Part shown: in pieces, positions 9,188 to 49,395 of the stretch
Layout: every line of letters starts with the position of its first letter
Position numbering within the stretch: the stretch's first letter is position 1
Source of the DNA: Azolla caroliniana
Lineage: Eukaryota; Plantae; Polypodiophyta
Assembly (NCBI GenBank): GCA_043228905.1
Contig: JBHGNT010000007.1
Coordinates: 16,120,001-16,184,000 of the forward strand
Reading direction: 5' to 3'
DNA: 64,000 nucleotides
The notes under the pieces: generated by a model
The model's input: the letters and a program-made list of their open reading frames with translations, nothing else
Databases searched by the model: none
Told to the model about the DNA's origin: nothing
Position numbers and translations under genes: made by a program

Positions 9188-9441
9188 AATGAGAGCGAGT
9201 TTTCAAGCAACTCATGTATATCCGAAACGACCAAGAGACGAGGGGTTCTTCACATAGTCCGTTATTTGCTAGAAATAACGAAGATATTTAGTGAGGAGGA
9301 TCGTAGGGATATTATATGTAGAGTGTTACACCATCAACGTTTCGATGAAGACATGATTATAATTAAATTTAGGATCCAATGTATTTCAAAAGATATTGTA
9401 GAATCTATGAAGTCATCCCTAGACTTAGTGAAAGGTGTAGA

Positions 9442-9736
9442 GTGTTGGGAATATATCCCTCCAGTGGGAGGAGTCGATTGTTGAACATAGCCGACAGTCA
9501 AGGACAGGGAGCAGCCGACTAGTCGGATACGAGCCAACAATCGAAGAGTTCACTTTGAGAGAGTCAACATAGAGTGTTGACTAGGAGAGAGAATCGACAA
9601 GAGGTGATCAAGGTCGAAGACACGACCGGCTAGTTGGGCCAATCGGATGGTCGATGACCAAGCCAACTAGTTACACTGACCCAATAGTTGACAGATGAGT
9701 CGGTTGATTAGTAAGACTATTATTATTATTAGATAA
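9442..9736 (+). mobile_element. Partial LTR of copia family A
   Basis: Similar to 6323-6570 and preceded by purine-rich GTGAAAGGTGTAGAG. Confidence 0.75.
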
Positions 9737-10340
9737 TGTTGAGAATCAAGCTCAACCTAGTGCAATGTGTGAACACACCATTTGAGAATCTCTGATCACT
9801 CAAAGGTCAAGAGTCACACCACTACTCTCTACACATTAACTATGTGTCATAGAATCATATTCTATGACACATAAATGATGAGTTCCATATTTCCCATGAC
9901 TATGAGTCTTCACATTCCCTAAGAGAGAGTAGTTGTTGTAGTGAGTTAATTAAGAGAGAGGGTGACCTTATATAAAGCACCCTCCTCCTACTTCATATGG
10001 TGTCGGTTGTGACTCCTTGTAATGCTACATTTTATAATTTGTATTCTCCTTGTTAATATACACCTTCTTCTTGAGTACTTCATTTTTCTTTCATATATTC
10101 ATTTTGTTTTTCCACTTCTCTCATCTCTTTCCTCTCACACATACACATAATACAAATCTCTTCGGATGCACAAGAATCAAATTTGATACTTTACATGGTA
10201 TCAGAGCGGTTTGGTAGCTCAATCTAACCCATCCACATGTGTTGTGTTCTACGCCAACGCTCAAGAAGAACCGGCTCATCGTTATCTTAGTGCCACTACA
10301 TGGCTCGTGTTCGAGAGAAAAAGAAAAGAAGAAGTAGATC
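9737..10340 (+). mobile_element. Copia family B 5' LTR (9737-10195) with PBS-Met and leader, inserted in the family A LTR
   Basis: TGTTGAGAATCAAGCTCAAC matches the reverse complement of the LTR at 60299-60647. TGGTATCAGAGC at 10196-10207. The leader matches 60150-60286. Confidence 0.85.
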
Positions 10341-11796: not shown

Positions 11797-12754
11797 AGTA
11801 GGGCGTTGATTTGGGTTGACCATTACTAAGTATGGCACTGCAGTCGCATGTGGATTAATCTTCATTTCTCTTTTTAAGTTTTGCACGTACATTGAATGTG
11901 GCTCTCAAATTTCTAGAGCCCATCTTCCTATCTCTGGATCGATTGGTGGCAGTTGAATAGAGCAGATCAGGAAGTGAAATAATTGTCCTTCACGAACAAG
12001 CTTCATCTTTACAATATTTTCTCTGATCTGGTTCTGCTCTGAGGTGAGTATCCCTGATGAAATGTGGGCCCCTAGAGGAATAACTTTGAGCTTGGCTTCC
12101 TCCTCCTCATCTTCTACGAACTCGAGGACCTCCGACTCGTTCTCTTCTGGTTGATGCCTTTTCTTGTACTTCTTATGTTCTGGTTTGGACTTCTGGGTAG
12201 ACTTTGGTGGGGTTGTTGCTTGTGTGACCATCAGCTCTCCCTTAATGTACAGGGGCAAAGAAACAATTAAGTTATTTTTTGTTTGAACATCCTTTTTTAG
12301 GGCTTTAGGGTGGCAAGAGTCAGTAATGAAATTACGTTCATCGATCATGACTCTACGAACGCCCACCAACCTATCAACATTGAAGAAGAGGTTCGATGAG
12401 TCGTTGTCTTCATATTCGATGTTTCATACGTAGTCGTATGTGAATGTCTTTCCGACTTGCAACTTGCCTTCACCTTCAGACTTTGCAAGAATAAGAAGCA
12501 GGTCCCCTTCTTCCTCGGTGTAGATCAGTGTCCACTCCACATGGTGGTAGCTCTTCAGGCGAGGCTCCCCACTCTATTCGCCTAAAGTCTTCGGCATCTT
12601 ACCAACAAAAGACTTTGAAGTTTCGTCACCTCTTGACTCGATAAGTGTTTTGTGAGAATCAACTTTCATCATGGTGTCAGAAGATCTTTTTGTTGGTGAT
12701 AGAATTTTCAGTTTGAAAGACGGCACCTTCTATCGTGGCTCACTGAAAACAACA

Positions 12755-28246: not shown

Positions 28247-31200
28247 TATTAAACCAATGGCACAAAATGAGAGAGAACACTCTTTGTATTCAATAGAAAT
28301 AAAAAAGGTAAGTGCGACTAACTAATGACTTGGTCCTTCCCCATTGGGAACCCCCCCCCCCCCTTTTCAAAATCACAACTACTTCTTTAAATAGAAACTT
28401 ATTGGGAGCCCAAACGTTCATGAGATGAAACGTTTGTGCTTCCAAGATTTATTTAAATATTCTACTATTTTCTTTTATGTAATTGTAACGGTTGTAACAC
28501 TCTCCCGCTAGTCGAGAGAGTTTCGACCTCGAAACTATTGCATAAAGGTTCCTAGGTCAGGGCTTTGGTTGTTGTAGAGGCTCAAGTAGCCATTCAAACC
28601 CTGCTTGTAGCAACGCTTCTTCAGTTACCCACGATGCTTCGGATAATGGTTTCCCTCGCCACTTGATGAAGTAGCGTCTTCTCCCTCTACGAACCTGTGT
28701 CTTCAAAAGTGCTTCAGGTTCACATCTAATAGTTGCCTCGCGCCCCCATGTTTCATCTGGGTGGAAACGTTTTAGCAGGCTAACATGAAAAACATCATGT
28801 ATCTTGGAAGCCTCCGGAAGTTGTAATTTGTAGGATACATTATTGAGTTGTTTGACCACCTTGTATGGTCCATAGAACCTATGGTTAAACTTGGGCGTGA
28901 GGCCCTGAAGTAACGGCCAACTAGCCGAATTGACAAGTACTAAATCCCCTGGGTAAAACTCCACGTGTTCCCGTTTCTTATTGACACGATTGATAATCTG
29001 TGACTTTGTTTTTATGAGATGCTCTTGTGCTGCTTGCATCCGGTCCTTCCACTCCTCCAAAAAACGAGACACATCCAATTCCTCTACTTGTGTCTTCTTA
29101 TTTGTATGCAATAAAGCAATCGGTGTGAGGACTTCTTTACCTGTGGCGAGCTCGAATGGAGAGAATCCCGTTGATGAATGGATTGCAACATTGTAACAAA
29201 ATTCTAGCATGTCGATGTGTTCCACCCAGTCCGTCTGATCCGCTTTGACATAACATCGAATGTAGTCCTCGATGCCTTGATTGAGTCGCTCAGTTTGCCC
29301 GTCTGTTTGCGGATGTGCGGATGATGACATACGGAGCTGTGTGCCTAGAATCCGAAACAATTCTTGCCAAAATCCACAAGTGAACCTTGGATCCCTATCT
29401 GATACTATGATTTCTGGCAGCCCGTGATACTTAAAAACATGTTTAAAAAACAAGTGTGCTACATGTTGCGCTGTTAGAGGTGGCTTTGCCGGCACGAAGT
29501 GAGCTTGTTTAGAAAAAAAATCCACAATGACCATAAGGATGCAAAACCCCTTGGATGAGGGTAAATCAATTATAAAATCCATGCTTATTACATCCCATGG
29601 ACGGGATGGTACCGGCATCTGTTGCAGTAGTCCGAGCGCTTTTCCTCGCCTAGCTTTCACGGCTTGACATACCTGGCATGAACGTATATAGTCAATGATC
29701 TCATGTTCCATTCTTGGCCACACGAAGAACTTTTTAACAGCTTTTAATGTGCACTTTTGTCCCCCATGCCCGGCCATGTGGCAATCATGTAATTCCCTTA
29801 GTATCTTTGCCTTTAGTGATATATTATTCGGGATTACTATTTTATCATCACTCCACAATAAGCCGTCCTGCAACTTGTACATTCCATGAGTTATGCTCCC
29901 ATTCATGACTTTGGTTACTAATTCGCGCATCTCTGCATCCTCTGTTTGTGCTTGTCGTACTTCATCTATCCATCCTTGAGCCGAGATGACAGAAATATGG
30001 AGGATGCGTGGCAATCGACTTAATGCATCAGGTAATGTATGCAACTTGCCTTTTTTATGTACAATCTCCAAATCAAATTCTGCTAACATATCTTGCCATC
30101 TCATTTGTTTTGTTGAAAGTCGTGGTTGTGTCAGAAAATATTGCAAGGAGATGTTGTCGGTCACTACTCGTGTAAATTTATCTTGTACGTAGTGCCGCCA
30201 CTTCCGAAGTGCATAAACTATTGCCAACATTTCCTTCTCGTGTGTGGGCCACCGACTTTCTATCGCTGAAAACTTTTTTGACTCATAGGCAATCGGATGA
30301 CCATCCTGCATAAGCACAGCCCCATAAGCAAAATCAGAAGCATCAGTGTGAATTTCAAATGGTTTTGAAAAGTCCGGGAGTTGAAGAACCGGTTGCACAC
30401 ACACTGCCTTCTTCAATTGATCGAAGGCATGTTGTTCACGTTCAGACCAACAGAATGTTTGTGAGCCTTTGATGAGATTCGTCAGTGGGGTTGCGATTTG
30501 ACTGAAGTTTTTAATAAATCTTCTCACATACTGGACGAAGCCTATGAATTGCTGCACTTCGAGGACTTTGGTGGGTCGTGGCCAATCTTGAACTGGTTTT
30601 ACCTTGGCCAGATCCATCTTGAGCCCTTCTCTTCCTATTCGAAATCCTAAGAATTCAAGCTCCTCCATAGCGAACTCACACTTCTCAGGTTTTGCGTATA
30701 ACTGATGCTCCCGTAATCGTTGCAGCACATTGGTGACATGTTGTTTATGTTCCTCAAAAGTCTTACTGAAAATTAACAAATCATCAATGTAAATTATCAA
30801 AAATTTATCCAAATAATCCCTAAAAATTTCATTTCCGAGCCTACAGAATGTTCCGGGTGCTCCTGTCAAACCGAAACTCATCACCAGCCATTCAAAACTG
30901 CCATATCTCGTCCTAAATGCTATCTTCTCAATATCCTCCGTAGCTACGCGGATTTGATGATACCCTGATCTGAGATCTATGCGAGAGAAATAACGGGCTC
31001 CTTGTAGTTGATCCAAGAGGTCGGAAATCAAAGGTAATGGGTATTTATTTTTTATGGTGATTTTGTTGAGAGACCTGTAATCCATGCACATGCGCAATGT
31101 CCCATCCTTCTTTGCCACAAAAATGACGGGCGCACCGTAAGGTGATTGGCTTGGTCTAATGAACCCACATGCTTCTAATTCTTGTAATTGTTGTTTTAGC

Positions 31201-33477
31201 TCTGCTAATTGAGTAGCATTCATTCGGTAAGGAGCTTTTACAGGTGGTATGCTTCCGGGAATGGTTGGGATTTTATGATCGATTGACCTTTGTGGCGGAA
31301 GAGTTTTGGGTAGCTCCGCTGTTAAGACATCCTTGTATTGCTCTAATATTTCCTTCATATTTTCTGCCCTTAGTTCTTCCTTCCTCACTGTTGTTGATGC
31401 TTGCAGGGCCGTGCAAAGAAAGAGTTGGCCGCCCTTCTTTAAGACTCGATTTGCCACCTTTCCCGTGCAAAGTTTTGCGGTCACGGTTGTCGCCTTTGCC
31501 TTTGCATTTCTCCTATGCATGTTTACAATGATGCCTCCCTTCCCATCTTCATTATCTAGTAACACCTTATCTACCTTTTTCCCGAATTGGTTGATGACGT
31601 ACTTATCCACCCATTCTAGCCCTAAGATCACCTCGCACCCATCCATGTCAACCGCTAGAAAAGGTGTTCGCCCCTTCCATTCTCCCGCTTCAATCAAGAC
31701 ATTGGCTGCTAATGAACACTTATTAGTGTATCCCTGTACAAAACTCACAGAGAGGTTGGTTAAAGGTTGCAATTTTAATCCCCACTTCTTCGCGCATTCA
31801 GGTGTTATGAAGTTGTGTGTTGCACCGTTGTCTACCATTGCCTCACAACTATGCCCATTAATTTTTACGTTGAGAAAGAGATTACTTGTGTTATTGAGTT
31901 TGACTGTGAGACAGGTAGGCCAGGTGGTGGCGGCTCCTGCACGTACAGCGACTTCTTCATCTTCTTCCTCATATTGCGCTGCTATTGCTTGTATGTCTTG
32001 CTCGGAACCTTCCTCGAGCTCTGTTAACTCGAGTTGTGAGGTGGCTGCCCGCACCGTGAGTTGCTTCTTTTTTGGACAATTGGATGCCAAGTGAGGGCCT
32101 CCACACTCAAAACAGCCTCTTCTAATTAGTGGGGTTCGTTGTGTTGAAGTAGAAATGGGACTCCCCGGCTGTCCTCCTCCTCCCCCGCTATTTGTCCAGC
32201 TCGATCTAATTGGATCCCCTCGTGTTGTTCCTCTTCCTATCGAACTAGTGGTAGTCGTCCACCCACGATTGTTGGATGTACTTCCTAGATTGTTGTGGAA
32301 AGGTCGGGAGCTCCCTTCTATGTCTCCTATCCTCTCTGCCACCCTCATGGCTTCCTCACAAGTTTGAGGGTTCATCTTTTCTACCTCTATCCTGATCCGA
32401 GGCTTCAATCCAACTAGGAACCCGTGGAGTTTGGTTATTTGATGAAGATGCGGTAGCTGCAATGTCACTTGGCGATACCTCTCAATGTACATGGTGAGTT
32501 GCCCTTCCCCTTGTCTCAACATCCTCCATTCATCCATGATGCGGAGATGTTCATTTTGTGGTATGAAATAATGACGCAATTCCCGCTTAAACTCTGTCCA
32601 AGGCGTGAACTCAAACACGCTTTCCCCCGACATGTACCAATTTTGTGCTGGTCCATCCAAAAAACACGCGGAGACCATCACCCACAAGTCGGGTTCTACT
32701 TGACTTTGGACGAGGAATAGTTCGGTTTCTCTTATCCATCTTGTAAGTACCACCAAGTTCCTCTCCCCCATGTACATTTTTGGTTTGATAGGTTTAAATG
32801 ATCCCAAGTTGTGGCGGCGGTTCTCGGCATTCCCGACTTCCAGCCTCTGCACCATCTCCTCCAAACGCCCTGGTGCTCCTTCCGTGGGCCTTCTCCCTTG
32901 CAGCCCCGATTCCTCTTCTTCTCTCTCCCATCTTTGATCTTCCATATTGAACCTTCCATTCTCTAATTCGGTGGCCTCTTGGTCTCCTCGATCTAGGGCT
33001 ATCTCCCCTAATGGAGTGTCTCCTTCGTTCCCTAGCTCTCCCAAGTTGATCCCTCTTCTTCGCCTTCTTCCCGCCATTGGTTAGATAAAAGAGAGAGAAA
33101 AAATAAATAAAAATAGTCTACTATCTTTGTGGTTACCTTGACTCCTCTCGTGGTGTCGTGTGCCACTTCTTCAATCTCTTCTTGCTGGAATGGCTTGCCA
33201 ATCCTTATCTTGCTCTGATACCAAGTATTAAACCAATGGCACAAAATGAGAGAGAACACTCTTTGTATTCAATAGAAATAAAAAAGGTAAGTGCGACTAA
33301 CTAATGACTTGGTCCTTCCCCATTGGGAACCCCCCCCCCCCTTTTCAAAATCACAACTACTTCTTTAAATAGAAACTTATTGGGAGCCCAAACGTTCATG
33401 AGATGAAACGTTTGTGCTTCCAAGATTTATTTAAATATTCTACTATTTTCTTTTATGTAATTGTAACGGTTGTAACA
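28247..33477 (-). mobile_element. Full-length young Ty3/gypsy chromovirus; LTRs 33226-33477 (5') and 28247-28499 (3')
   Basis: LTRs appear identical except for one C in a homopolymer. TSD GAGGG/GAGGG; PBS-Met at 33212-33223; PPT AGCGGGAGAG at 28500-28509. Confidence 0.97.
28557..33077 (-). CDS. Gag-pol polyprotein, 1506 aa (gag, CCHC knuckle, PR, RT, RNase H, IN, chromodomain)
   Basis: Uninterrupted ORF with CFECGGPHLASNC, VDNGATHNF, YIDD, TDASDFAYG, HHCC, D-D-E, FYGPY and YFIKWRG..SEASW. Confidence 0.95.
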   Translation of the reverse strand: MAGRRRRRGINLGELGNEGDTPLGEIALDRGDQEATELENGRFNMEDQRWEREEEESGLQGRRPTEGAPGRLEEMVQRLEVGNAENRRHNLGSFKPIKPKMYMGERNLVVLTRWIRETELFLVQSQVEPDLWVMVSACFLDGPAQNWYMSGESVFEFTPWTEFKRELRHYFIPQNEHLRIMDEWRMLRQGEGQLTMYIERYRQVTLQLPHLHQITKLHGFLVGLKPRIRIEVEKMNPQTCEEAMRVAERIGDIEGSSRPFHNNLGSTSNNRGWTTTTSSIGRGTTRGDPIRSSWTNSGGGGGQPGSPISTSTQRTPLIRRGCFECGGPHLASNCPKKKQLTVRAATSQLELTELEEGSEQDIQAIAAQYEEEDEEVAVRAGAATTWPTCLTVKLNNTSNLFLNVKINGHSCEAMVDNGATHNFITPECAKKWGLKLQPLTNLSVSFVQGYTNKCSLAANVLIEAGEWKGRTPFLAVDMDGCEVILGLEWVDKYVINQFGKKVDKVLLDNEDGKGGIIVNMHRRNAKAKATTVTAKLCTGKVANRVLKKGGQLFLCTALQASTTVRKEELRAENMKEILEQYKDVLTAELPKTLPPQRSIDHKIPTIPGSIPPVKAPYRMNATQLAELKQQLQELEACGFIRPSQSPYGAPVIFVAKKDGTLRMCMDYRSLNKITIKNKYPLPLISDLLDQLQGARYFSRIDLRSGYHQIRVATEDIEKIAFRTRYGSFEWLVMSFGLTGAPGTFCRLGNEIFRDYLDKFLIIYIDDLLIFSKTFEEHKQHVTNVLQRLREHQLYAKPEKCEFAMEELEFLGFRIGREGLKMDLAKVKPVQDWPRPTKVLEVQQFIGFVQYVRRFIKNFSQIATPLTNLIKGSQTFCWSEREQHAFDQLKKAVCVQPVLQLPDFSKPFEIHTDASDFAYGAVLMQDGHPIAYESKKFSAIESRWPTHEKEMLAIVYALRKWRHYVQDKFTRVVTDNISLQYFLTQPRLSTKQMRWQDMLAEFDLEIVHKKGKLHTLPDALSRLPRILHISVISAQGWIDEVRQAQTEDAEMRELVTKVMNGSITHGMYKLQDGLLWSDDKIVIPNNISLKAKILRELHDCHMAGHGGQKCTLKAVKKFFVWPRMEHEIIDYIRSCQVCQAVKARRGKALGLLQQMPVPSRPWDVISMDFIIDLPSSKGFCILMVIVDFFSKQAHFVPAKPPLTAQHVAHLFFKHVFKYHGLPEIIVSDRDPRFTCGFWQELFRILGTQLRMSSSAHPQTDGQTERLNQGIEDYIRCYVKADQTDWVEHIDMLEFCYNVAIHSSTGFSPFELATGKEVLTPIALLHTNKKTQVEELDVSRFLEEWKDRMQAAQEHLIKTKSQIINRVNKKREHVEFYPGDLVLVNSASWPLLQGLTPKFNHRFYGPYKVVKQLNNVSYKLQLPEASKIHDVFHVSLLKRFHPDETWGREATIRCEPEALLKTQVRRGRRRYFIKWRGKPLSEASWVTEEALLQAGFEWLLEPLQQPKP

Positions 33478-35071: not shown

Positions 35072-36923
35072 ACAAACTATATACAACTATATATTATGGA
35101 ATCACTACGTACCAGTGAGAAGTAATCCCAAGTCATGCTATTTTTGTTTTGTCAATGAAAGATTATGGGCACATCACCTACAATGGATGAGCAAAAAATA
35201 GATACATACAAAAGTTATCAAATTTTAACACAAACTCAATACAATGTATCAAGTTCGTGTTGAAAACTCTATTTTTAAACACGAACTCGATATATTGTAT
35301 CGAATTCATGTTTAAATGTTTTAAATGCAAACTCGATACATTGTACCGAGTTGGTGTTGAAAAGTTGAGTTTTTCAACACAAATTCGATACAATGTAACG
35401 AGTTCATGTTGAAAACTCTGTTTTTGAACATCAATTGGATACATTGTATCGACTTCGTGTTTAAAATCTGACTTTCCAACATGAACTTGATACAATCTAT
35501 CGAGTTCATGTTTAAAGTTTTTTTTTTTTTTTTGATTTTTTTCTATTTATTTGGGGTCTTTTGTTTTTGTTTTAAAAAAAAATTGAAGTGATGAAAAATC
35601 AAGAGTTTTGATCACAAGTCGATACAATGTATCGAATTCATGTTTAAAGTTTTTTTTTCCAAAAAAAAATTTAAAAAATTTAAAAAATTACTTTAAACAT
35701 GAACTTGATACATTGTATTGAATTGTGGTGAAAATTTTGGTTTTTTCATCAACTCAATCTCAATTTCTTTATTTCTTTAAATCAAGGGAAAAATATTTTG
35801 AACATGAATTTGATACATTGTATGTAATTGTGATCAAAACTCTGTTTTTTTTACATCAACTCGATACAATGTATGGAGTTCATGTTTAGAAATATTCTTT
35901 TTTATCAAATAAAAAAGGTTTACGGTTTACATGAACTTGAATGGTACTAAAATCTTTGTTTTTACAAGAGAAAAAGATGCATATCAATACTGCAAAGAAG
36001 TATGTTGCACAACAAAACACCTTATGGTGAACATGTGCTTTATTGCTTAACAAAAAACCATTAATAATTGTGTTGATGGTAATTGAACCTTACAAATGCC
36101 ATTTACATGTTCTATAAAATATTCTCGTGGTTCTTAATCACCACTTCAAGCACTTAATGTTGATCTTCATAGTTTGGTTCATTTACAATTGAGAAACATT
36201 TATGTGGAACTAAGAATTACAACACGTGCATAACTCAGGTGACAAGGAAAGTTGCAAGAACTCAAGGTGGGGATATTAATAGCTACACATGTAGATGGCC
36301 ATGACCTAGGGCACCAATTCTGCATTGGTAAAGTTTTGGACGTTGTGATGCATTAAACTTTTGTATTACATCTATCATTGACATTAGTGAGGTGGATATC
36401 ATTGTGTATGACTTTACACTAACAACAGTTGGGTGTTTAAGGATGACAACGATAGACATAATAAAAGATATATTACCAAGTCTAGAAGATATCTCAAATT
36501 GAAGGCGAACAAGAATTAGTGCACACCATTTGATGAAGACAATGATTTGATTGGTACATTTGAAAATGAGGAGGAAGAGTCACACATGTATATTAGCTAT
36601 AGTAGTGATTCTCATGAAAGGAATGATAATAGTGATGCAAATAACTCCTAAATGTATTTTTTGTGCAATGATATGTAACAAATTTAGACAACATTTTATC
36701 GAATGAAATAAAAAAGTTGATTGTTTTGATATCTTTCGCTTATGATTTCGTTAGGATCTAAAATACTACTAGTTGTAATTTCTCCTTCAAAATACACAAC
36801 GTTACTTTTCATATTTGGCCAAAATTTGACATTTTTCAATTTTACCAAATGGTGAAAATTTTAGCTTTTTCATCAAGTTTTCGAGAACATGTGATACTGG
36901 TATCATGGTGTTTTGTGAAATGG
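35071..36923 (+). mobile_element. Decayed non-autonomous relative of the Sola-like transposon
   Basis: 36190-36650 resembles the transposase C-terminus at 15380-15950 (LKVGILIA...DLGHQF.IGK vs LQVGMLVA...KLGHPFWIAK). The right end TTTTGTGAAATGGC resembles 16206-16220. About 10 palindromic CGATACAATGTATCG motifs. Confidence 0.7.
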
Positions 36924-38156: not shown

Positions 38157-39689
38157 TCAGAAGTTCCCGACGTGAGGAATGAGTAGGGAGTACCATTCGG
38201 CGCTGGGCTCGTTGAAGCAGAGATTCTTCCATTCCTTGATTGTTCCGGCCGTGGCCAATGCCAAGGTGGCCAAGCTCAACCACGGGGAGAGGATCCACAT
38301 GTTCCAAAGTTGTAGATGTCGAAATGGCGGTACAAGGAGAATGACAGCTAAACACACAGCCGATGCGTAGCACACACGGGAATGATGAGCGGCTTTCTTG
38401 AAGTAGGAACCGTATCGGAATAGCATGGAGGATGGCAGCCAACTGGTGCAGATAATGATGATGAGAAATCCGACAATGTAGAGGGCTCTGAGGGAAAGAG
38501 GCTCTTTTTCCTCTTTAACTTTCTCGGCTTCTTGGATGTGCTTGACTTGCTGCTGGAAGGATGAGAACTCGGCCGGGGTGAGGTTAATGAGGACTGGGCG
38601 TTGGGTGCTAATGCTGCCAAACATTTGGAACAAGACCTGGAGTAGCGACACGCATGAGAAGAACATCGCTACTACCTCGATCGGTGACATGATTCGGTCC
38701 TCGAAGATGCGGATCATGCCGCTCACAATGTAGCCCAGGGATTGCAATCCCAGGAGCATCATCCCCCACGAAGTGTTCGTGCGCAGATAGCTCAGCTCCT
38801 CGTAATCGGGAACGAACCCTAGCTGCAACAAGGCCTGTTTCTGTGCAGGTTCACGCAAAAACATTACTCTGTCGAGAACTGCCGACAGTTCAGACGAATC
38901 GTCGTTGTTGTTCGTGCTGCATTCGGGCATGGGGACTATATGCTCTTCCTGCTCATTCACACTACCGGTGCCCCCTGGCGCATGTGAGGTACCCCCATCT
39001 TTCATGGATAATGGACTGTGCTTATAGCACAGCATTTCCTTCCCTTGTATCTGCAGCGGATGAGTGGCTTCCAGATCTTGCAATCTCTTTGTTTTTGATG
39101 GCGTGGGTGCTGTTGGTGGCGATGGAGAGGGATCAATGACCTTGTTAACGTCGAATTTGCCAGTTTTGAGAATGATCTTTAATTCAGATAAATGCGGCCG
39201 AATCCGGTTCCTCATGATTTCGAATACGATACTCATCACTTCGATTAGGACACAGCATGACTCAGAGGACTCGATATTTTCAGGGTTCCAGTATTCTTCT
39301 CCTGAGTATCCGATCCATATGTCTGCCACCATAAGGACTTTAAGTGATCGAGGATCCCAATACAATTCCTTGTCACTACTCCCGCTGCTGCGTTTCAATG
39401 GCTCACCTTGCCAGAATTTCTTCCTTTTTAATCTCCACGATGTCTTCCAGGTATTAACGCTGCTGGAGAATGCTGCCATAGCTCCAAGTCCCGGCACCGT
39501 CATAGCCGTGAGAATCTTTATGAAGTAGCTGATGCGTATACCCAGTACTTGTGCCACGAACGACCTATTCATTAGGTCTGCAGCCTGAGCCAGGTAGATC
39601 ATGAAGACGGTCACCACACCGGAGAGAGTGGCAAACAGGGATCGCTCATCCCCAGAAAATGGTGTACAGCTGCCTACAGCTTCTGCCAT
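38157..39689 (-). CDS. Uncharacterised intronless ~7-TM membrane protein, 510 aa (paralogue 1), fungal-family-like
   Basis: Long intact ORF with a conserved paralogue at 45241-46794. Two N-terminal and five C-terminal hydrophobic segments; ends W...IPHVGNF. Confidence 0.9.
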   Translation of the reverse strand: MAEAVGSCTPFSGDERSLFATLSGVVTVFMIYLAQAADLMNRSFVAQVLGIRISYFIKILTAMTVPGLGAMAAFSSSVNTWKTSWRLKRKKFWQGEPLKRSSGSSDKELYWDPRSLKVLMVADIWIGYSGEEYWNPENIESSESCCVLIEVMSIVFEIMRNRIRPHLSELKIILKTGKFDVNKVIDPSPSPPTAPTPSKTKRLQDLEATHPLQIQGKEMLCYKHSPLSMKDGGTSHAPGGTGSVNEQEEHIVPMPECSTNNNDDSSELSAVLDRVMFLREPAQKQALLQLGFVPDYEELSYLRTNTSWGMMLLGLQSLGYIVSGMIRIFEDRIMSPIEVVAMFFSCVSLLQVLFQMFGSISTQRPVLINLTPAEFSSFQQQVKHIQEAEKVKEEKEPLSLRALYIVGFLIIIICTSWLPSSMLFRYGSYFKKAAHHSRVCYASAVCLAVILLVPPFRHLQLWNMWILSPWLSLATLALATAGTIKEWKNLCFNEPSAEWYSLLIPHVGNF

Positions 39690-39784
39690 AGTAATTAAAC
39701 TGAAATTAAGTGCGAGTTTAAGCAGGGTTAGGCTTCTGATTAAGAGTTCGGCGCATCAAATGATTCACCGTAATTAGTGAGTCA

Positions 39785-39925
39785 GTCCTGATGCCAGAGC
39801 AAACTACTTCATAAAGCAACTTTGCCCCTCATTGACTTTGTCCTGATGCCAGAGCAAACTACTTAATAAAGCAACTTTGCCCCTCATTGACTTTGGAAAC
39901 CAACTTTTGCCTCTCATTGACTGCT
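39785..39925. promoter_or_regulatory. W-box (TTGACT) cluster upstream of paralogue 1, partly created by a 55-bp tandem duplication
   Basis: TTGACT at 39832, 39887 and 39917; further W-boxes near 40036, 40101 and 40189. Confidence 0.65.
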
Positions 39926-41317
39926 CACTTGTCCAGGGCAACATCGCTTTCGATATTGTCAACAATAATGATAATTCATTTTGTCATTGAATGATGGGCG
40001 GCATTAAAGTGTGTATATCTTTAAGGAGTCTGACAAGTCAAGGCCTTTCATTGGTTTTGGTTGGTCTTGTCTAGTGTACCACCTTGCGTTTCATTCATAT
40101 TGACCCATGCTCCAAAGAAGATTCGGCTTTCCCATAGTGTTCAATAATCCATTTGCCATTGATACACATCACATAAGCATTGATCATTTTGACTTCTCTT
40201 ACAATATGTTCAATAATTCATCTCTCATTGATAGTAGAGAGCTTTCTCGAGGAATTCATCACTTTGGCTTTTCTTAGACAAAGTTGAGAGCTTTTATTTT
40301 TGCTATCTATTCATTTGTTGTCGCATTTGTAGTGATTAAAAGAAACAAGTCACGAAGTTATCCTTTCTCTATCTTACTAGTCATATCACCTTGCAAGAAA
40401 GAGAACAGTCTCCCTTGAAACCCTACCAAGCTCCGAATTTTAGAAGACTTTTACACACCAACAACTTGTCTCTTGGTATTTGGATCCCCCGACTTCTGGA
40501 ATGCTCCAATCCGACGTAAGCATCTAGCTCGGGATTGATACCCGTTAAAATGTCTCTAAAGAGGGTGGGTTTTGTGTCAGATGAATCGACAAAAGTGAAG
40601 GGGCCTAAGTTGGCCAATTTCATACACTCGAATGAGATGAAGGTGGGGCCTTCTTGTTCCTCCTTAACAGAATTTAAGAAGAAGAAGAAATTATCCCTCC
40701 ACTAATTCTAATCCCAAGTTTTTACTCTCAACTTTACAGATTAAATAGGTCTTAACGAGACTTCACAGTTAAGTACAGATACACATACGATAAGTACATG
40801 TATAAAGACAACAACCATTTCCATTATTATGAAAGTATATGGCACGCATACAAGAGGTAGATTCATAAGGGTTTCGCTAAGTAGCAATTAACCTTAGTTA
40901 TGCTCTACTTGAACTAAATGATTGGTTACTAGAGCTCTACCAAGGTTTGTCGAGAACAGAAAGTTGAAGTGCTACTACAACCCTTTAAGATTAAAATTTG
41001 TATTTACCCAACAACAACATACAGGAACAATTGAAGAAATCCAAAGCACACATTGTTGGACTTGAAACTCACCAACCTTTGGAATATTGGCCAAACTTAA
41101 AATCCAAGGTCAAACACGCCCTATTGCAATAGCTTTTATGATCAAGGCTACATCCGAGATGCTCTATTGTTCATGTCAAAATCAAGAAATTCCTTGGTTA
41201 GACATGGTGGACATTGCCACAACATCTACATTAATCTTGCCTCAAATTTTGGAGTTCCTCAAATTCAAGGGACCTCAATATAAGAAGGCTAGCTATTCGC
41301 CATCTTATTAGGGAGGT

Positions 41318-41560
41318 TGTCAAGGTTCCGAGACAGAGAGGAGAGAGAATCATAACACACAAACAAACAAACAAGCATGACTAACACAAAAGTAAGTATT
41401 TTATAAAAAAGGAGTACAAGGATAGAAATAACTTAGGGGCTTAAGATTGGCGTTAAACCGAATTATTGCTATTTATAGGGCCTTTAGGAGCATAACCTGA
41501 AGTTTCTAGAATGTTCTGAAGAATTCTAGAATATTCATGGAGTTTCAAGATTATTCTATA
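41318..41560 (-). mobile_element. LTR-like fragment abutting and truncating the thioredoxin first exon
   Basis: TGTCAAGG boundary, reverse TATA CTATTTATAGG and TTCTAGAA repeats typical of LTRs. Confidence 0.4.
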
Positions 41561-42441
41561 AGGTCACCATCCAAATCGACAAGCTCGTATGTCTCACCTC
41601 TCCATCGCTCTTTCAAGCAGACCCCGAGTCTCTGTATTTCTCAATCATGCATGTCCTTGAAATTGATGCTTGTGCGTGGCTTTGTGCAGGTTGTGAGCAT
41701 GTATTATGCATCCTGGAGCTCCCCTTCCAAGGCCATGTATGATGTGATGGTGAAACTGACCGCGGTACAAAACCCTAATCAGGTCATCTTCTGCAAGGTT
41801 GACATCAATGAATCCAAGGTAACTTCTCTTCTGTCTCTCTATCTCATTCTAGGGTTTCAGGATTCCTAAAATTTTGCAGAATACCCCTATGTAGCTGTAA
41901 ATTTTCAAAGAAGATCCGCAGGCAGTAAGTATTCTGATAAATGTGGAAATCTTACTAGGGATATTTTGGTTTTTGCTACACTTTACAGCCATGAAGGCAT
42001 TTGAGCAGTATGCAATGTACGTACCATGTTTTGCTATTTGAAACTGCGAGCACATGATTTGTAATGATATTGTCATATGCAGAACATTGCCACTTGATTT
42101 GTAATGATATTGTCATATGCAGAACATCTCCACTCATGATTTGTAATGATATTTGTCATATGCAAGGCATCTCCACTCATGATTTGGAATGATATTTGTC
42201 ATATGCAGGGCATCTCCACTCATGATTTGTAATGATATTCGTCATATGCGGGGCATCTCCACTCATGATTTGCAATGATATTTGTCCTATGCAGGACATC
42301 TCCACTCGAATGGTGGTTCGCATGGTACCCACCATCATCTTCACACGGGAAGGAAAAGAAGTAGGCAGGATGAAGAGCGTCGTAAGCATTCAACACCTCC
42401 AGGGGAAGATCACATCGCTTTTACAACCGCAAATGACATGA
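41560..42441 (+). pseudogene. Thioredoxin-h-like gene with a WSSPS active site; exon 1 remnant ends 41586, exon 2 is 41690-41818, exon 3 is 42295-42441
   Basis: Spliced reading ...IDKL|VVSMYYASWSSPSKAM...FCKVDINESK|DISTRMVVRMVPTIIFTREGKEVGR...*. Intron positions are Trx-h-like with GT/AG ends; the exon 1 remnant has no in-frame ATG. Confidence 0.75.
42053..42306 (+). repeat. Minisatellite of six ~41-43-bp copies of the thioredoxin 3' splice-site region
   Basis: Unit CATGATTTGTAATGATATTTGTCATATGCAG|RRCATCTCCACT; the last copy supplies the in-frame acceptor. Confidence 0.9.
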
Positions 42442-43482
42442 GAACTTTTTGTGGGTTAGCACCGCGAAGAAGAAGTGGTTTGAGAAATTCTTTCCTCGGT
42501 ATGAATGAGTAAGCTAGTTTTAAGAACCCTTGGCTAGTGGTTTGCCTATACTGTAGGCCATATGTGTGTAATTGAAACAGTTTTGTTCCCAACTTTTGCC
42601 CCTTCTGAACCTTCACTTGCACCCTTGGGTTTTCACAACTAATCAACAATTGCTGCCTCATCAGCACTACATTCCATCTCCTTCATTTGTCCACATCAAA
42701 GGAAGCCTCTGGTTCAGAAGCTTGGCGTTACGAGGTTTACTTCCATGAGCCACTAACTGGGTGTGTGCCTACCTACCTTGTATTTACCCCCAAGAGGATG
42801 TTAATTCTATTAATTAGCCGCTTTTACGCTCAATAATCTTTTCTTGCTTTTAACATCTTCTATAGCATGAGAACTGTTTTGGTCATCAATCAGCCTTAAT
42901 AGGATCCAACAATTAACAAAACATGCTGAAAGATTTATCCACGATAAACGGAAATGAACTTTTAAGATTGATTATTAGCATTCCTCAAGATCTCTTGAAT
43001 TCTCTTTAATCTCTGTTATACATGATGTATATGTTTGACAACTGCTCGCCATAATGAGATTGGACTAGTAAAGCATTAAATTGATGCAGGAGTAATATGC
43101 ACAAACCTATAGCAGTATGGGCACATCATACATGATGACCCCATATGCTCCCCATATTCTACATTCAATCTTTACCGGAGTTACAAATTTAGGACATAAA
43201 TTGAAACTGAGCTAGATTGAAATACAGTCCATTCTATTATCATGTGCACAATCCCATTTTTAACACATTTGAAGTAATTGGCTCCCGGTATACCTTGAAG
43301 TAACACATTTTTAACACATTTGAAGTAATTAAGTATTAACATTACAAAAAGTACTCTTTTCTTTTAGCCAAAAATTATACTTTTTGTGTACACCATAGCG
43401 TGCTTCAACCCAAGGGTTATGACTAAGGGTTTAGAGATATATGGCTCAAGAGGATAACACTCCTATTCTTTTATCAAAACTT

Positions 43483-45106
43483 GGCTTTGATACCATGTAG
43501 CAATTATAACTTCGAAGGAGATGAACACAAAGCTAAGAAGGTACTAAATGGATAATAGAACTAAAATAAGAACTTGTAAATATGTGCTTAGATGTGTTGA
43601 GGCAGGTGCTCTAGCCTTTAAATACGTTTTGAAATGTGAATATCACAAACTTATTATATCTATTTTTAGATACTAACACGTTTCATTAACTAAATTCTTA
43701 GTTTTCAATATTGTGAAATGCACATAAGAGATCGAAACCAACGTACTTAGTGCCTTACTTCTTGCTCAATTTATAGTTGATACAAAGGTACCTATTTGGG
43801 TTGGTTTAACTACATGTGTGCTAAAAAGGGTGTGCAAAGAGGGTGGCACAAAGGAACACATGCACACCACATTTCCCCACTGAGAGAAACAAGAAGGTTT
43901 ACGACATGGGAAAGGAATGGGGGTTAGAAGCTAGGCTTGGGGTGGCAAATGGCTTGATGCAGACAACATGGGAGGAGGTGAATCAGTTGTTTGAATCGCA
44001 TCGGAACAAGTACATGGTGGATCTAATGGCACGAACTACGGTGAACGAGCCGAATCCCTCGATGCTTCTGGCACAGTTGTGCAACTTGTAGGTTCCGGGA
44101 GTTAGCTTGTCAAAGGATGTGGAGCATCTGGTGGAGATAGAGCCCCCAAGTGGCACTATCCATGTTGGTAGGGTTGGAATGGTTCAATGGATGATTCTGG
44201 TGGGAGGGGAGGCGAGGGTCACGCCCATAGAGTGCTTGAAAATGGTTGATTTGTGCGACCATCTCTTGCTTGAGGGTCTTCTCGAGGCATTCATGAAGCC
44301 ATTTGTCAGAAAGATCAATCGCATTTGTGTCAATTGCTCCTATGGACAGGAGGATGAGGCCATTTGCCTAAAAGATCAATTGCACCTAGACTTGGTTGAG
44401 ATGGAGGAAAAGAGATTTATCATGTAGGAGGGGGATCACGGAGAGATCAATTGGCAAAGAAAGATCCATCGCTCCTACGGATTGACAGCCACTTCGATTT
44501 GGTTGAGACGGGGGACAGGAAGGCTATCGTGTACGAGCTAACAATTGGCAGATAAAGATAAATCGCCCTTGTGGACAGAGGGCCACCTAGACTTGGCTGA
44601 GGTGGGGGACAGGGGGCTATCGTGTACGTGCTAACAATCGACGGATAAAGATCAATTGCTCCTGTGAATTGCGAGTATGTTTGGGCTTGATTGAGGTGGG
44701 GGCCAGGAGGGCTATCGTGTACGAGCTAAGGTGGTGCTAATGGAAAAGATACTACTACTAGAGACTAACAAGATAATGTCGGTCGAGTGATTGATGGTTG
44801 CGAGAGCGATGCATCCCTTCAAAGCGGAAGAGGCGGATGCTTGGACGTAGGGGACTGGTACCCCGCTTCTCCACCAATATGTGAAATGCACATAAGAGAT
44901 CAAAATGAGCCTACTTACTTCTTACTCAATTTATAGTTGATACAAAGGTACCCATTTGGATTGTCTTAGCCAACATGCTTGCTAAAAAGGTGGGTTGACT
45001 TAGGTACATGCATGCAAAAAAGGGTGTGCTAAAAGGGTGACATAAAGGAACACATGCAGACCACAATATATTAGAGTTTTGTTTATATTAAAAGTTAGTT
45101 CCAACA
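43483..45106 (-). mobile_element. 5' LTR plus PBS-Met of a decayed LTR element, interrupted by the mini LTR element
   Basis: GGCTTTGATACCA at 43483-43495; LTR from 43496 (TGTAG), resuming at 45070 and ending ...CCAACA at 45106. Confidence 0.55.
43712..45065 (-). mobile_element. Small non-autonomous LTR element (TRIM-like) primed by tRNA-Ala
   Basis: LTRs 43712-43871 and 44880-45065 (TG..CA). PBS TGGTGGAGAAGCGGGGT at 44860-44876; PPT AGTGGGGAAA; ATAT flanks; internal tandem repeats at 44310-44730. Confidence 0.8.
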
Positions 45107-45240
45107 ATTCCAAAACTACATAGGAAACATCATTCATTATGTGTTGCACCCGAGGGAGCTAGATAATGAAGACACAATGAAAGATTGTTATTATGGTACA
45201 CTATGAGAGAAGGCTCATGCCGTGCAGAGAAAAACACTTA

Positions 45241-46794
45241 TCAGAAGTTCCCGACGTGAGGAATGAGTACCGAGTACCATTCGCCACTGGGCTCATTGAA
45301 ACAGAGATTCTTCCATTCCTTTATCGTTCCTGCCGCAGCCAATGCGATGGTGGTCAAGCTTAGCAATGGTAAGAAGAACGGCATGTCCCCAAGGTTTTCA
45401 TGAACAAATGGTGGTGTAAGGAGAATGATGCCAAAGCACACTGCTGACCCGAACCAGAGACGGGAGTGATGAGCGGCTTTCTTGAAGTATGAACCATAAC
45501 GAAACACCATGAACAATGGCAACCAACTGGTGCAGATAATGATGAACAGATATCCGACCACGTAGAGGTTTGCGCTTCCACGAGGCACTCGTTCTGTTTC
45601 ATTGGCTTCTTTGATGTGCTGGACTTGTTTTTGGAAGGATGAGAACTCAGCCGGGGTAAGGTAAATGAGGATTGTGCGTTGGGTACTAATGCCGCCAAAC
45701 ATTTGGAACAAGACCTGGATTAGGGACACGCATGAGAGGAACATCGCCACTACCTCAATCGGTGACATGATTCGGTCCTCGAAGATGCGGATCATGCCAC
45801 TTACTATGTAGCCCAGGGATTGGAGTGCCAGGAGCGTCATCCCCCACGAAGTATTGGTGCGCAGATAGCTCAGCTCCTCGTAATCGGGAACGAACCCTAG
45901 CTGCAACAAGGCCTGTTTATCAATGGGATGCAAAAACATCACACGCTGTTGTAGTCGCGCATCTTCATCAACTGGTTCTCCTGATGGCAGTTCATTTGAA
46001 ATGTCGTGGTGGTCCCTGTTGCATTCGGAGATGGGGACTATATGGTGCTCCTGCTCATTCAGATTATCGGCCCCTCCCGCATGTGAGCAACCATCATCTT
46101 TGATGGGTAATGCACTGAGCTTATAGTACAGCATGTCCTTACCTTGTATCTTCAGCGGATGAGTGGCTTCCACATCTGGCAAACTCTTTGGTTTTGATTT
46201 GTTATCTTCCTTGGGGGATGTTGGTGGCAGCGGAGACGAAAAAATGTCATTTTTCATCTCGATTTCTTCAAATTGGACTTTGACCCTTAATCCAAATAAA
46301 TCCTTACTCGCCTCTTCTTCTTGCACATCGATTGGGTTACTGACCACGGCTTCATTTGTGCTACCATTATTACCGGCATTTTCAGGGATCTCGCCTTCTC
46401 CGGAATAAGCGATCCATATCTGTGCCACCAGAAGAGCTTTAAGTGTTCGAGGATCCCAATATAATTGGCTGTCATTACTCCCTCTGCTGGCTTCCAATGG
46501 CTTACCTTGCCAGAATTTGTCCGTCTTTAGTTTCCATGATATCTTCCAGGTATTAACGCTGCTGGAGAAGGCTGCCACAGCTCCAATTCCAGGTACCACC
46601 ATGGCCGTGAGAATCTTTCCGAAGTAGCTGTTGGGTTCGCCCACTAGCATTTCGAAGAGCGGCCCATTCATCAGGTCTGCAGCCTGAGCCAGGAAGATCA
46701 TGAAGACTGTCACCACACCAGAGAGAGTGGCAAACAAGGATCGCTCATCCCCGGAAAATGGTGTACATGATGAGCTGCCTACATCTTGTGCCAT
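45241..46794 (-). CDS. Uncharacterised intronless ~7-TM membrane protein, 517 aa (paralogue 2), fungal-family-like
   Basis: Intact ORF sharing identical blocks with paralogue 1, e.g. CTPFSGDERSLFATLSGVVTVFMI, KQALLQLGFVPDYEELSYLRTNTSWGM and IPHVGNF. Confidence 0.9.
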   Translation of the reverse strand: MAQDVGSSSCTPFSGDERSLFATLSGVVTVFMIFLAQAADLMNGPLFEMLVGEPNSYFGKILTAMVVPGIGAVAAFSSSVNTWKISWKLKTDKFWQGKPLEASRGSNDSQLYWDPRTLKALLVAQIWIAYSGEGEIPENAGNNGSTNEAVVSNPIDVQEEEASKDLFGLRVKVQFEEIEMKNDIFSSPLPPTSPKEDNKSKPKSLPDVEATHPLKIQGKDMLYYKLSALPIKDDGCSHAGGADNLNEQEHHIVPISECNRDHHDISNELPSGEPVDEDARLQQRVMFLHPIDKQALLQLGFVPDYEELSYLRTNTSWGMTLLALQSLGYIVSGMIRIFEDRIMSPIEVVAMFLSCVSLIQVLFQMFGGISTQRTILIYLTPAEFSSFQKQVQHIKEANETERVPRGSANLYVVGYLFIIICTSWLPLFMVFRYGSYFKKAAHHSRLWFGSAVCFGIILLTPPFVHENLGDMPFFLPLLSLTTIALAAAGTIKEWKNLCFNEPSGEWYSVLIPHVGNF

Positions 46795-46974
46795 AAATCA
46801 ATTGCGGTTTGGGGCGGCCTAAGCTTCTGAGGGTGGTCAAGAAGAGAAAAAGGACTGAGATAAAGTGTGAGTTTAGGCAGGTGTAGGCTTCTGATAAAGA
46901 GTTTGGTGCGTCATAAGAATCACCGTAGTTAGTTAGTCCATGCTAGAGCACATTAAAATATATGAAGGAAAGTA

Positions 46975-47185
46975 ACTTGCCTGCCTTTCATTGACTTTGG
47001 AAATCAACTTGCCTCTCATTGACTTTCGAAAGTGACTTTGCCTCTCATTTATTGACTGGTAGGTTCATGAGACTTTCAAAAGGCACTTTGCCTCTCATTG
47101 ACTTTCAAAAGTGACTTTGCCTCTCATTGACTGGTAGGTTCATGAGAGCCCCTTGCTTTCCGTTTACTCGAGGTTATAGTCAATC
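46975..47185. promoter_or_regulatory. Amplified W-box array upstream of paralogue 2
   Basis: TTGACT at 46991, 47019, 47052, 47099 and 47127; AGTCAA at 47178; plus GTGACT cores in CTTTGCCTCTCATTGAC units. Confidence 0.7.
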
Positions 47186-49395
47186 CAGAGAGTCTAGACT
47201 CTAGAGTACATAGAAACATTGTCCTCGATATTTGTCAATAATATTCTTATTGAATTACTATTCTCAATAATGGTAATTCATTTTGTCATTGAAAGATGGG
47301 AGGCATTAAAGTGTGTATATCTTTTAAGGAGACCAACAACTCATCATTTTTGGTTGGTCTGTCTATAGACCACTTTGTCTTTCATTCACTTTGACCCATT
47401 GTCCATAAAAGAAACAAATTTCAATAATGTTCAATAATTCACTTTGACCCGTGGCCCATTGATGCAAGAGAGCTTTCTCAAGGAATTGATCACTTTGACT
47501 TTTCTTAGAATCTGTTCAATAATTCATATCTTATTTATAGAAGAGAGTTCCCTTTGGGATTTGAACACTTTCACTTTTCTTAGACAAAGTAGAGGGAGGC
47601 TGGAGCCTTTATTATTGCTACCTATTCATTTGTCCTGGCATTTGTAGTCATTTAAAGAGTCAAGACGAAGTTATGCTTTCACTATCTTATTAGTAATATC
47701 ACCTTCCAAGAAAAAGAACTCCCTTGAAATCCTACCAAGCCTGGAATTTTAGAAGACTTTTCGACTGCAACAGCTTGTCTCTTGGTATTTGCATCCCCCA
47801 ATTTCTTGAATGTTCCAAATTCGACCTAAAAACATCTCTAAACAGGGTTATGCGCCACTTGAATCAATAGAAGCGAAGGGAAGGGGCCTACGTTAGCGGA
47901 TGACACACACTTGAATGTGACGCAATCGGGATCTTCCGTTTCTTCTTGGACACGCAGAAGAAGAAGAAGTTATGCCTCTACTATCTATAATCCCAAGTTG
48001 TTAAGCCATGTCATGGGTAATGCCGCGACAGTTTTACCCAGTTCAAAGAGTAAGTTTGACTATGCCACACCTTACTGTCTCTCATTCTCACTCTCTCTCA
48101 CGTTAACTCTCAACTTAATCGATTAATAGGTCTTAACTAGAATCCACATTTAAGTACACGTATAAAAACGACAATTGTTTCGATTATTATGAGAGTATGT
48201 GACACACATACAAGGGGTAGATTGATTAGGGTTTGTCTAAGTAGCACTTAACCATAATCACTCTTTGGTTCGAATGAAAGATTAAGAAAATGGAATTAGA
48301 GATCTAGTTATAATTATATGAAAGGAGAAAACCCAAGAAGTAAGAACAACTACAAAACTTGACAAAATATGACTTTCTTAGCTTTTTACAATGGGATTGG
48401 GCAAATTTCCAGGAATAGTGTCAACATTCCGGTTACATTGGGACTTTTGCTGGCCAATGTGTGTCATGAACATATGCCAAAACGCCAAGACTCGTAATTA
48501 TTTAGAGATTCGAACCCATGATCTCCTAAAAATTGATGTGTAGCTTTAACCACTAGGATACATTATATTATAAAATATAATGGAAAGTTAGAGAAATTAG
48601 TTCTAAAAATATTTTCGTGTTCCCATGAGGCATTTTTGATAGACTTATCCATCCATTTTATTTTTTCAATTCTCAGATTATTTTACGGCATAAATTTTTT
48701 GTTTTAACATCGAGAATTCTTTCTGGTACATGCAGTTTAGAAGATAATTCTTCAGAAGTAACTAGAGTTTCAGTTGTAACTGTATTCTCACGAGAACCTA
48801 GAAGTTCTTTTACACGACTTACATGAAAATTTGGATGGATTTCAACGCCATCAGGAAGAGCGAGACGATAGGCTTATGAACCAATGCGTTTGAGGACTGT
48901 AAAAGGTCCAAAAAACCGTGGGGCTAACTTAGTGCACTTACCTGTTGACAATGTCTTAGAATTGTAAGTTACACGTAAAAATACCTTGTGTCAAGGGTTG
49001 AATACACGAGGTTGCCTATTAGGATCAACATAAAAACATGCTCTATCTTGAGTTGTTTTTATGTTATCTCGTGCAATATGCAATATATTGCATATCTCGA
49101 AGAAAGTTTTGCGTACTACGCAACTCATCATGATGTATATTATGTTTGGAGCTATTATAAGCAAAATCCAAAATTGGGAGATAAAGTTCCCATTTTGTTG
49201 GTTTTGCACCAATGTATGCTCGAAGCATGTCCTCAATAATTTGATTTACTCGTTCTGTCTGTCCATCGGATTGAGGGTGATCCGTGGAGCTCATTCTCAA
49301 TGTAGTTTCTAGCTTTTTAAAGACTTGTGTCCAAAAGTCGCTAGTAAACTTTGGATCTCGATCACTCATGATATCTATCTATAACCCATAAAAAC

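Follow-up and report, generated by a model that had tools for sequence, protein, structure and literature searches.

Two intact, intronless genes for membrane proteins stand close together in a stretch of the genome of the fern Azolla caroliniana, and the question they raise is one of origin: did they enter this plant lineage from a fungus, or do they belong to an older family of land plants? The stretch, here called the window, comprises 64,000 nucleotides of contig JBHGNT010000007.1 (assembly GCA_043228905.1, positions 16,120,001 to 16,184,000 of the forward strand), and all window coordinates given below are counted from its first letter. An original prediction, made from the letters of the stretch, had proposed a fungus-to-plant transfer that was kept under selection and duplicated. 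The reading preferred here, which we regard as likely, is that the two genes, A and B, are members of an unnamed intronless polytopic membrane family of ferns and mosses that has old and remote fungal kin.

Gene A (38157..39689, minus strand) is an intronless open reading frame (ORF) for a protein of 510 aa with seven transmembrane (TM) segments, and gene B (45241..46794, minus strand) is an intronless ORF for a 7-TM protein of 517 aa. Both ORFs are intact and start with ATG, and the two proteins are 64% identical in a full-length alignment. The pair is a tandem duplication with an offset of about 7.1 kb, in which homology runs through the ORF and a further 0.8-1.0 kb or so upstream; the pair of intact, intronless paralogues that had been described is real. 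No further copies or fragments of A or B were found in the window by tblastn.

Kyte-Doolittle hydropathy gives both proteins the same layout, in which a loop of about 240 aa separates two TM segments from five. TM1 and TM2 lie at residues ~20-76, the non-hydrophobic loop extends up to residue ~316, and the C-terminal TM segments of the gene B product are at residues 317-338, 348-366, 412-430, 446-464 and 473-491. In an AlphaFold2 model of B made from a 19-sequence alignment, the helices match the hydropathy segments and the TM core is confident (predicted local distance difference test score, pLDDT, 70-90), whereas loop residues 137-276 are disordered (pLDDT <50). Hydropathy and model agree with the arrangement first proposed, for which a loop of about 230 aa had been estimated. 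The sequence motifs originally listed can all be read in the translations, except that R-P is present only in A, B having R-T at this place.

The protein can be divided into three parts, described here for B. Residues 16-91 (46522..46749, minus strand) form an N-terminal module with R-S-L...T-L-S-G, TM1 and a TM2 with a conserved proline; alignments, plant hidden Markov model (HMM) positions 5-86 and hhalign place this module in mosses and in the fungal-type family discussed below. Residues 92-284 (45943..46521, minus strand) are a variable, mostly disordered loop with a K/R-rich start, whose length and sequence differ across the family and whose ratio of non-synonymous to synonymous substitution (dN/dS) is about 1.1. 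Residues 285-517 (45244..45942, minus strand) are the conserved core, which includes TM5-TM7 and a terminal W-x3-I-P-H tail and is marked by invariant alignment columns, by the matches of the HMMER search at profile positions ~285-510 and by a dN/dS of 0.37. Around the TM3-TM4 hairpin, the core residues of B are Q325, Y329, R336, P345 and E347. The chains end in W-Y-S-L-L-I-P-H-V-G-N-F (A) and W-Y-S-V-L-I-P-H-V-G-N-F (B).

The relatives of these proteins are found in ferns and mosses. An exhaustive HMMER search of 1.84 billion representatives at E<=1e-3, with a profile of the window group (A, B and their closest kin), recovered 39 relatives, all of which match the C-terminal domain end to end (profile ~285-510). 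Fern and moss matches have E values of 1e-12 to 1e-3, and the named matches are only from ferns or mosses (Adiantum capillus-veneris, A. nelumboides, Ceratodon purpureus and Sphagnum spp.). One unnamed match lies on a 462-kb contig and adjoins a B3-domain gene, and this neighbour assigns the contig to a plant. Word-indexed protein searches with window B, the family alignment and moss protein P0018 returned close relatives only and no fungi; with window B these were three close relatives from ENA. No Pfam match was found in A and B, 10 plant relatives and 4 fungal-type ORFs, in line with the expectation that the genes match no Pfam or TE protein; the sole candidate, Flavi_NS2A at E 0.099, was set aside as noise. 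No protein in the PDB matches the window proteins in sequence.

The whole architecture, and not the core alone, is common to the plant family in the 19-sequence alignment, at 16-22% identity. Residues Q325, R336, P345, E347, T490 and P512 (B numbering) are invariant in the 19 sequences, and Y329 and W494 are conserved in at least 90%. The N-terminal R-x-L..T-L-x-G module and the TM2 proline are present in the plant family, P68 being invariant. Proteins KAI5063159.1 of Adiantum capillus-veneris, KAG0563592.1 and KAG0561128.1 of Ceratodon purpureus, and KAH8972519.1 of Sphagnum fallax have the architecture of A and B and, like them, no Pfam match. These proteins and A/B have in common G-K-x-A-L-L..P-x-Y..L, the hairpin Q..G-Y......R....L-x-V-S-P-x-E, Q-R-P, three further TM segments and a terminal W....(I/L)-P-x-x-G. 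They differ in the loop, which has about 240 aa in the window clade and 60-120 in the moss and fern proteins, and at the N-terminus, where the moss proteins have an additional hydrophobic segment that the window clade lacks. In Ceratodon the gene has no introns (1251 bp for 416 aa) and is set among ordinary genes, and many moss members are single ORFs.

In a maximum-likelihood tree, the window group, Adiantum and unnamed transcripts make up a fern clade, beside a Sphagnum clade and clades of Ceratodon/Bryopsida. Within the ferns, the window group stands as sister to the clade that contains Adiantum, with a Shimodaira-Hasegawa-like approximate likelihood ratio test (SH-aLRT) value of 94, on a stem of 2.2 substitutions per site. 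The plant tree follows the species tree, and the window lineage is a fast-evolving branch of the plant family. Within plants, the pattern looks like vertical inheritance since before the split of mosses and ferns. The original prediction had recognised no angiosperm family of this kind, but the host is no angiosperm: the nearest relatives are fern and moss proteins, and A/B lie inside the fern clade. The competing possibility that the original prediction itself named, a vertically inherited plant family, stands in part: such a family is found within land plants, but not across algae and seed plants.

What, then, of the likeness to fungi? The fungal motif given in the original prediction served only as bait: a degenerate pattern at the DNA level, for D-K-S-K-G-D and, after a gap, Q-x2-W-F, was scanned over JGI metagenome contigs from soil. 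At least 120 loci were found against about 3 expected by chance, nearly all of them with an identical in-frame span of 59 nt, and the ORFs of these loci are a strongly conserved family. Neighbouring genes on the bait contigs are eukaryotic and include Mrp51, Sen1_N and NACHT-WD40; Mrp51 is not known outside fungi. The bait family is a very large, unnamed, eukaryotic and at least partly fungal one. One full-length single-ORF member of 483 aa (L024:5008-6456:+) has R-T-V-W-D-I-V-W-S-C..T-I in its N-terminal part and ends with W-V-T-F-I-P-H-I.

Several comparisons connect this fungal-type family to the plant family. The plant HMM, run against 1,981 ORFs of the bait loci, matched 15 at E<=1e-3 and none of the reversed decoys. 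These matches form two collinear modules, the core and the N-terminal module (HMM positions 5-86), and the second of these lies in upstream ORFs that the bait had not selected (E ~1e-4, no decoys). The N-terminal match holds for the plant profile; the window proteins themselves read R-S-L-F-A-T-L-S-G..T. In the core, plant Q-x2-G-Y-x6-R-x7-S-P-x-E and fungal Q-x2-W-F-x6-R-x7-T-x-L-E are in register. An hhalign comparison of the plant alignment with a 275-row fungal-type alignment gives a probability of 88-90% and P values of 1.3e-6 to 2.8e-6 over 212-215 columns. The score is 57.5, whereas block-shuffled alignments average 18.4 (standard deviation 2.5, maximum 27.4, n=150) and the reversed one reaches 20.9. 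Of 69 plant proteins, 16 attain E<=1e-3 in the reciprocal search with the fungal-type HMM; of 69 decoys, none does. Of 73 fungal-type ORFs, 56 end in (F/L/I)-P-H, as A and B do. As a lead only, the nearest language-model clusters of window B and moss P0018 are unnamed and dominated by Ascomycota or Basidiomycota (0.93, 0.95).

The resemblance to an unannotated fungal family that had been suspected is thus borne out as a distant one, and on this evidence the plant and fungal-type families are very probably remote homologues. The alternative is that the fungal likeness reflects convergence, or a composition common to helical membrane proteins, and that the plant family is a land-plant invention. 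In its favour are the weak hhalign result with a thin alignment, the unrelated C-terminal halves, the lack of a structural match in the Atlas and HMM scores of only 14-20 bits. Convergence is nevertheless unlikely, given two collinear modules, of which one lies in ORFs outside the bait's selection, conserved polar residues (R; Q...R...E) that align in register, and the same C-terminal tail; shuffled and reversed controls reach at most 27.4 against 57.5, no decoys were found in either direction, and two independent language-model queries led to fungal clusters.

Remote homology does not make A and B fungal-type proteins. In L024 the modules follow one another as in the plant proteins, at about 12% identity: N-terminal R-T-x-W-D-I..S-C..T-I and two helices with a conserved P-E, a loop, the hairpin core and a W-x-x-F-I-P-H end. 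In A and B, E-L-S-Y-L-R-T-N-T-S and T-Q-R-(P/T) stand at the places of D-K-S-K-G-D and W-W-x-K-P-L, and the fungal C-terminal module G-G-x-H-C-x-A-W-x-F-x-F-P...L-W-R is missing. Because D-K-S-K-G-D and this C-terminal module are not found in plants, the plant family is best seen as a putative sister, and not a member, of the fungal-type family. A further feature concerns gene structure: among loci L006-L125, the frame breaks at HMM positions ~110-120, just after TM2, in 25 of 31 adjacent collinear ORF pairs. This break, probably an intron, suggests a conserved position without counterpart in the plant genes; only its position is given, as intron lengths derived from HMM coordinates were too noisy. 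Where a fungal-type gene is divided among several ORFs, the searches and alignments treat each of these ORFs separately.

An unrooted joint tree of the cores bears directly on transfer, as one branch with 99% SH-aLRT divides 53 plant cores from 45 fungal-type cores. A recent fungal gene transfer into this plant lineage, kept and duplicated, could account for the intronless genes, the TE-rich region, the missing seed-plant relatives and the likeness to a fungal family. Against it, identity to the fungal-type proteins is about 12% and HMMER alone misses them; full-length moss and fern homologues are closer than any fungal-type sequence; the plants form one group on the 99% branch, and their tree mirrors the species tree. 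Because of that branch, the low identity and the species-like plant tree, a recent or lineage-specific fungus-to-plant transfer is rejected, and we consider it scarcely credible. The original prediction of a transfer into this lineage fails on the same points, with A and B lying inside the fern clade and the plants standing apart from the fungal-type proteins.

The link between plants and fungi would be either an ancient transfer before the moss-fern split, or an older shared eukaryotic ancestry followed by loss in seed plants. A transfer, if there was one, would predate that split. That bryophytes or embryophytes gained fungal genes in ancient times is an accepted class of event (PMC12448838, Table 1 and immune-gene section). 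The present family is at most a new candidate for the category of ancient fungus-to-land-plant transfers.

Are A and B still working genes? Their coding sequences differ at 21.3% of aligned nucleotides (proportion of synonymous differences, pS, 0.28), and when random substitution was simulated at half this load, a lineage was free of stops in only 0.2%. All eight coding indels between A and B are in frame, compared with 11 of 43 indels in multiples of three in the homologous upstream DNA. As stop-free survival is so rare and no coding indel breaks the frame, A and B are not chance ORFs; both are held open by selection. The dN/dS between A and B is lowest in the C-terminal TM domain (0.37) and highest in the loop (1.09), and both the N-terminal module and the overall comparison give 0.66; these values bear out the claim that the pair is kept under selection. 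Purifying selection acts on the TM core, and the loop is drifting or diversifying.

A near-identical orthologue of A (P0001) is found on an ENA metagenome contig (L002, 2280-3812), with 96.8% DNA identity over 3.2 kb. The two differ by 41 non-synonymous and 6 synonymous codon changes without indels, so that dN exceeds dS, and the changes lie in three patches at nt 298-306, 397-428 and 796-808 of the coding sequence. The flanks differ by 1 nucleotide in 430 downstream and by 3.2% upstream. Diversifying selection or patchy gene conversion in the loop could explain the patches. A compensated frameshift as the source of the clustered changes was considered and rejected, the DNA alignment being free of indels. 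The high dN/dS values, 0.66 between A and B and above 1 between A and its orthologue, are also what would be expected if A and B were decaying or functionless duplicates that are still open by chance. This is very unlikely in view of the stop-free chance of 0.002 per lineage, the in-frame coding indels, the value of 0.37 in the C-terminal domain and the transcript-like coverage described below.

The surroundings are rich in TEs, as had been noted, with an intact chromovirus polyprotein, copia fragments and DUF7869 ORFs in the window. Very high-copy repeats lie between the two genes (43700-45060), where summed contig depth in DNA run X1 reaches ~49,000, against ~30-55 for the genes. Such a setting would fit ORFs that belong to a TE or were captured and spread by one. 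The genes themselves, however, have no TE domain in Pfam and no other copy in the window, and read depth over gene B is single-copy in the DNA runs; the homology of A and B is limited to the ORF and about 1 kb upstream, without terminal repeats, and the Ceratodon homologues stand among ordinary genes. A TE origin is accordingly most improbable.

Contigs of run X5 are transcript-like over gene B. They cover 45121..46843 (minus strand) contiguously and without joints, that is, the ORF with about 120 nt on the 3' side and 49 nt on the 5' side, and none is found on the adjoining unique promoter (46844-47771). DNA runs X1 and X2, by comparison, cover the whole stretch, at single-copy depth over gene B. 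Because the X5 contigs are limited to ORF B and short flanks, the pattern resembles that of an unspliced transcript, and gene B is probably transcribed and unspliced. X5 accounts for 35% of the words sampled from the 8.6-kb stretch that includes both genes, about the size of the two ORFs combined, and from this share gene A is probably represented in X5 as well.

Upstream of both genes are arrays of W-boxes (TTGACY). The region upstream of A (39690..40520, minus strand), which is homologous to that of B, has 6 W-boxes at 39832-40194, and the region upstream of B (46795..47830, minus strand) has 10 at 46835-47500, mostly within tandem repeats of 28-50 nt. Their density directly upstream of A and B is about ten times the window average of 1.4 per kb. 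The arrays suggest that WRKY factors may drive induction of these promoters under stress or in defence. Over the same two regions, the upstream DNA of A and B has 14.6% mismatches, below the coding divergence of 21.3%, which suggests conserved regulatory sequence or conversion.

The fold of these proteins is without a counterpart in the PDB. Foldseek with the window and moss models gave no match there at E<=1e-3 (E>=0.23; template modelling score, TM-score, <=0.24), and with VIA-align the window model reached at most Z 6.8 and the moss model Z 9.4, the latter over only 87 residues; these matches are generic helical hairpins within noise. Short strands of the TM2-TM3 and TM4-TM5 loops sit beside short helices in the models, and these two loops may together form a small juxtamembrane alpha/beta domain. 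A K/R-rich stretch follows directly after TM2, and the positive-inside rule makes a cytosolic position of the large loop probable; this long, disordered loop could be a regulatory or interaction region. The 7-TM core and the juxtamembrane domain would then do the conserved work, as a transporter, a channel or a membrane-embedded enzyme. The best candidates for a functional site would be the arginine before TM1 and the glutamine, arginine and glutamate at the TM3-TM4 hairpin, residues common to the fungal-type family.

The biological role can be proposed only tentatively. For the receptor, channel or defence executor of the original prediction, the W-box arrays of the promoters are indirect support only. 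A membrane protein that WRKY factors induce under stress or in defence would agree with these arrays, the tandem duplication, the fast loop and a lineage-specific expansion in mosses, a proposal that we regard as possible though doubtful. On one fungal-type contig (L090), a single case, a NACHT-WD40 gene that resembles nucleotide-binding leucine-rich-repeat (NLR) genes (4731-8714) is followed immediately downstream, on its own strand, by two members of the family (N-terminal ORFs 9436-9909 and 12196-12624). This arrangement hints at a similar role in fungi. A fuller scenario, in which an ancient fungal gain was kept only in non-seed plants and is now, in this fern, a WRKY-controlled, tandemly duplicating and fast-evolving defence component such as an inducible channel or cell-death executor, is rather improbable.

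A number of observations weigh against the preferred reading or against parts of it. On the plant side, no seed-plant or algal members were found in a single search with a fern-biased profile, and with a gene model of 4.6 kb for 434 aa in Adiantum, not all members are annotated as intronless. On the fungal side, the sample of fungal-type sequences is biased by the bait motif, and a domain not known outside fungi is present on one bait contig only. A and B score weakly against the fungal-type HMM, the mosses scoring best and the window proteins worst, and the fungal link therefore runs through the moss-fern profile. With a fungal-type alignment of 4 rows, hhalign gives P=0.002 and a probability of 13.5%, for the core alone and in the same register, and the C-terminal halves of the two families have no detectable relation (hhalign P=0.09; reversed control 0.14). 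When the moss model (pLDDT 82.9) was compared with structures of the Atlas, no fungal cluster was found, the matches being to unrelated families with TM-scores <=0.29. Regarding the genes themselves, the RNA nature of run X5 is itself a guess (label 'RNA?'), the W-boxes sit inside tandem repeats and hence are not independent events, and the pattern of changes between A and its L002 orthologue fits relaxed constraint as well as diversifying selection. Taken with these points, membership of A and B in an old fern-moss family with remote fungal kin is still the reading that we hold to be likely.

The remaining features of the window lie outside the gene pair or between its members. A Ty3/gypsy chromovirus polyprotein of 1506 aa (28557-33077, minus strand) is uninterrupted through gag, protease, reverse transcriptase, RNase H, integrase and chromodomain, and the element is possibly still active. 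A 308-aa ORF with the ferric-reductase NAD-binding domain PF08030 (17699-18625, minus strand) probably derives from an RBOH/FRO-type oxidase, as an exon or as a piece of a pseudogene. Two neighbouring ORFs, the first with DUF7869 (13956-15583, plus strand), are presumably the remains of a DNA transposon. A dense AT-rich array at 35205-35900, with repeats of about 51 nt and nested inverted repeats (arms up to 112 nt), looks like a miniature inverted-repeat transposable element (MITE) or satellite, and a 43-nt tandem repeat in about 5 copies is found at 42110-42324. The window has no Rfam match. Run X2, which is filed under a second organism label, contains 78% of the words sampled from the 8.6-kb stretch. 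Contigs of X1 and X2 over gene B are near-identical (1 difference in 759 nt and none in 2453 nt), and the two organism labels denote very close taxa or the same taxon.

A literature search, by motif string and through the literature on horizontal gene transfer, found no description of the plant family or of its fungal link. The plant proteins are already in databases as hypothetical proteins, and the family is undescribed in the literature found. The analysis ties an undescribed membrane family of ferns and mosses to one of the large unannotated families of fungi. If a rooted and well-sampled tree were to nest the plants in Dikarya, the family would be one more ancient fungus-to-land-plant transfer kept outside seed plants, in this case a membrane protein. 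In either case, it offers a tractable entry to the function of the fungal family, since the mosses Ceratodon and Physcomitrium and the fern Ceratopteris can be transformed.

Among known systems, two comparisons are informative. G protein-coupled receptors (GPCRs), microbial rhodopsins and MLO resemble A and B in the predicted number of TM helices only, and the 7-TM fold common to GPCR- and rhodopsin-like receptors was not found in the models by Foldseek (TM-score <=0.24). The second comparison is with ancient fungus-to-land-plant gene transfers, which were reportedly documented by Richards et al. in 2009; the microbial-type terpene synthases of bryophytes are a documented transfer case. The phyletic pattern is alike, with abundance in fungi, presence in non-seed land plants and no members found in seed plants. 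In contrast to the documented transfers, the divergence here is far deeper, and the tree is an unrooted one that establishes no donor.

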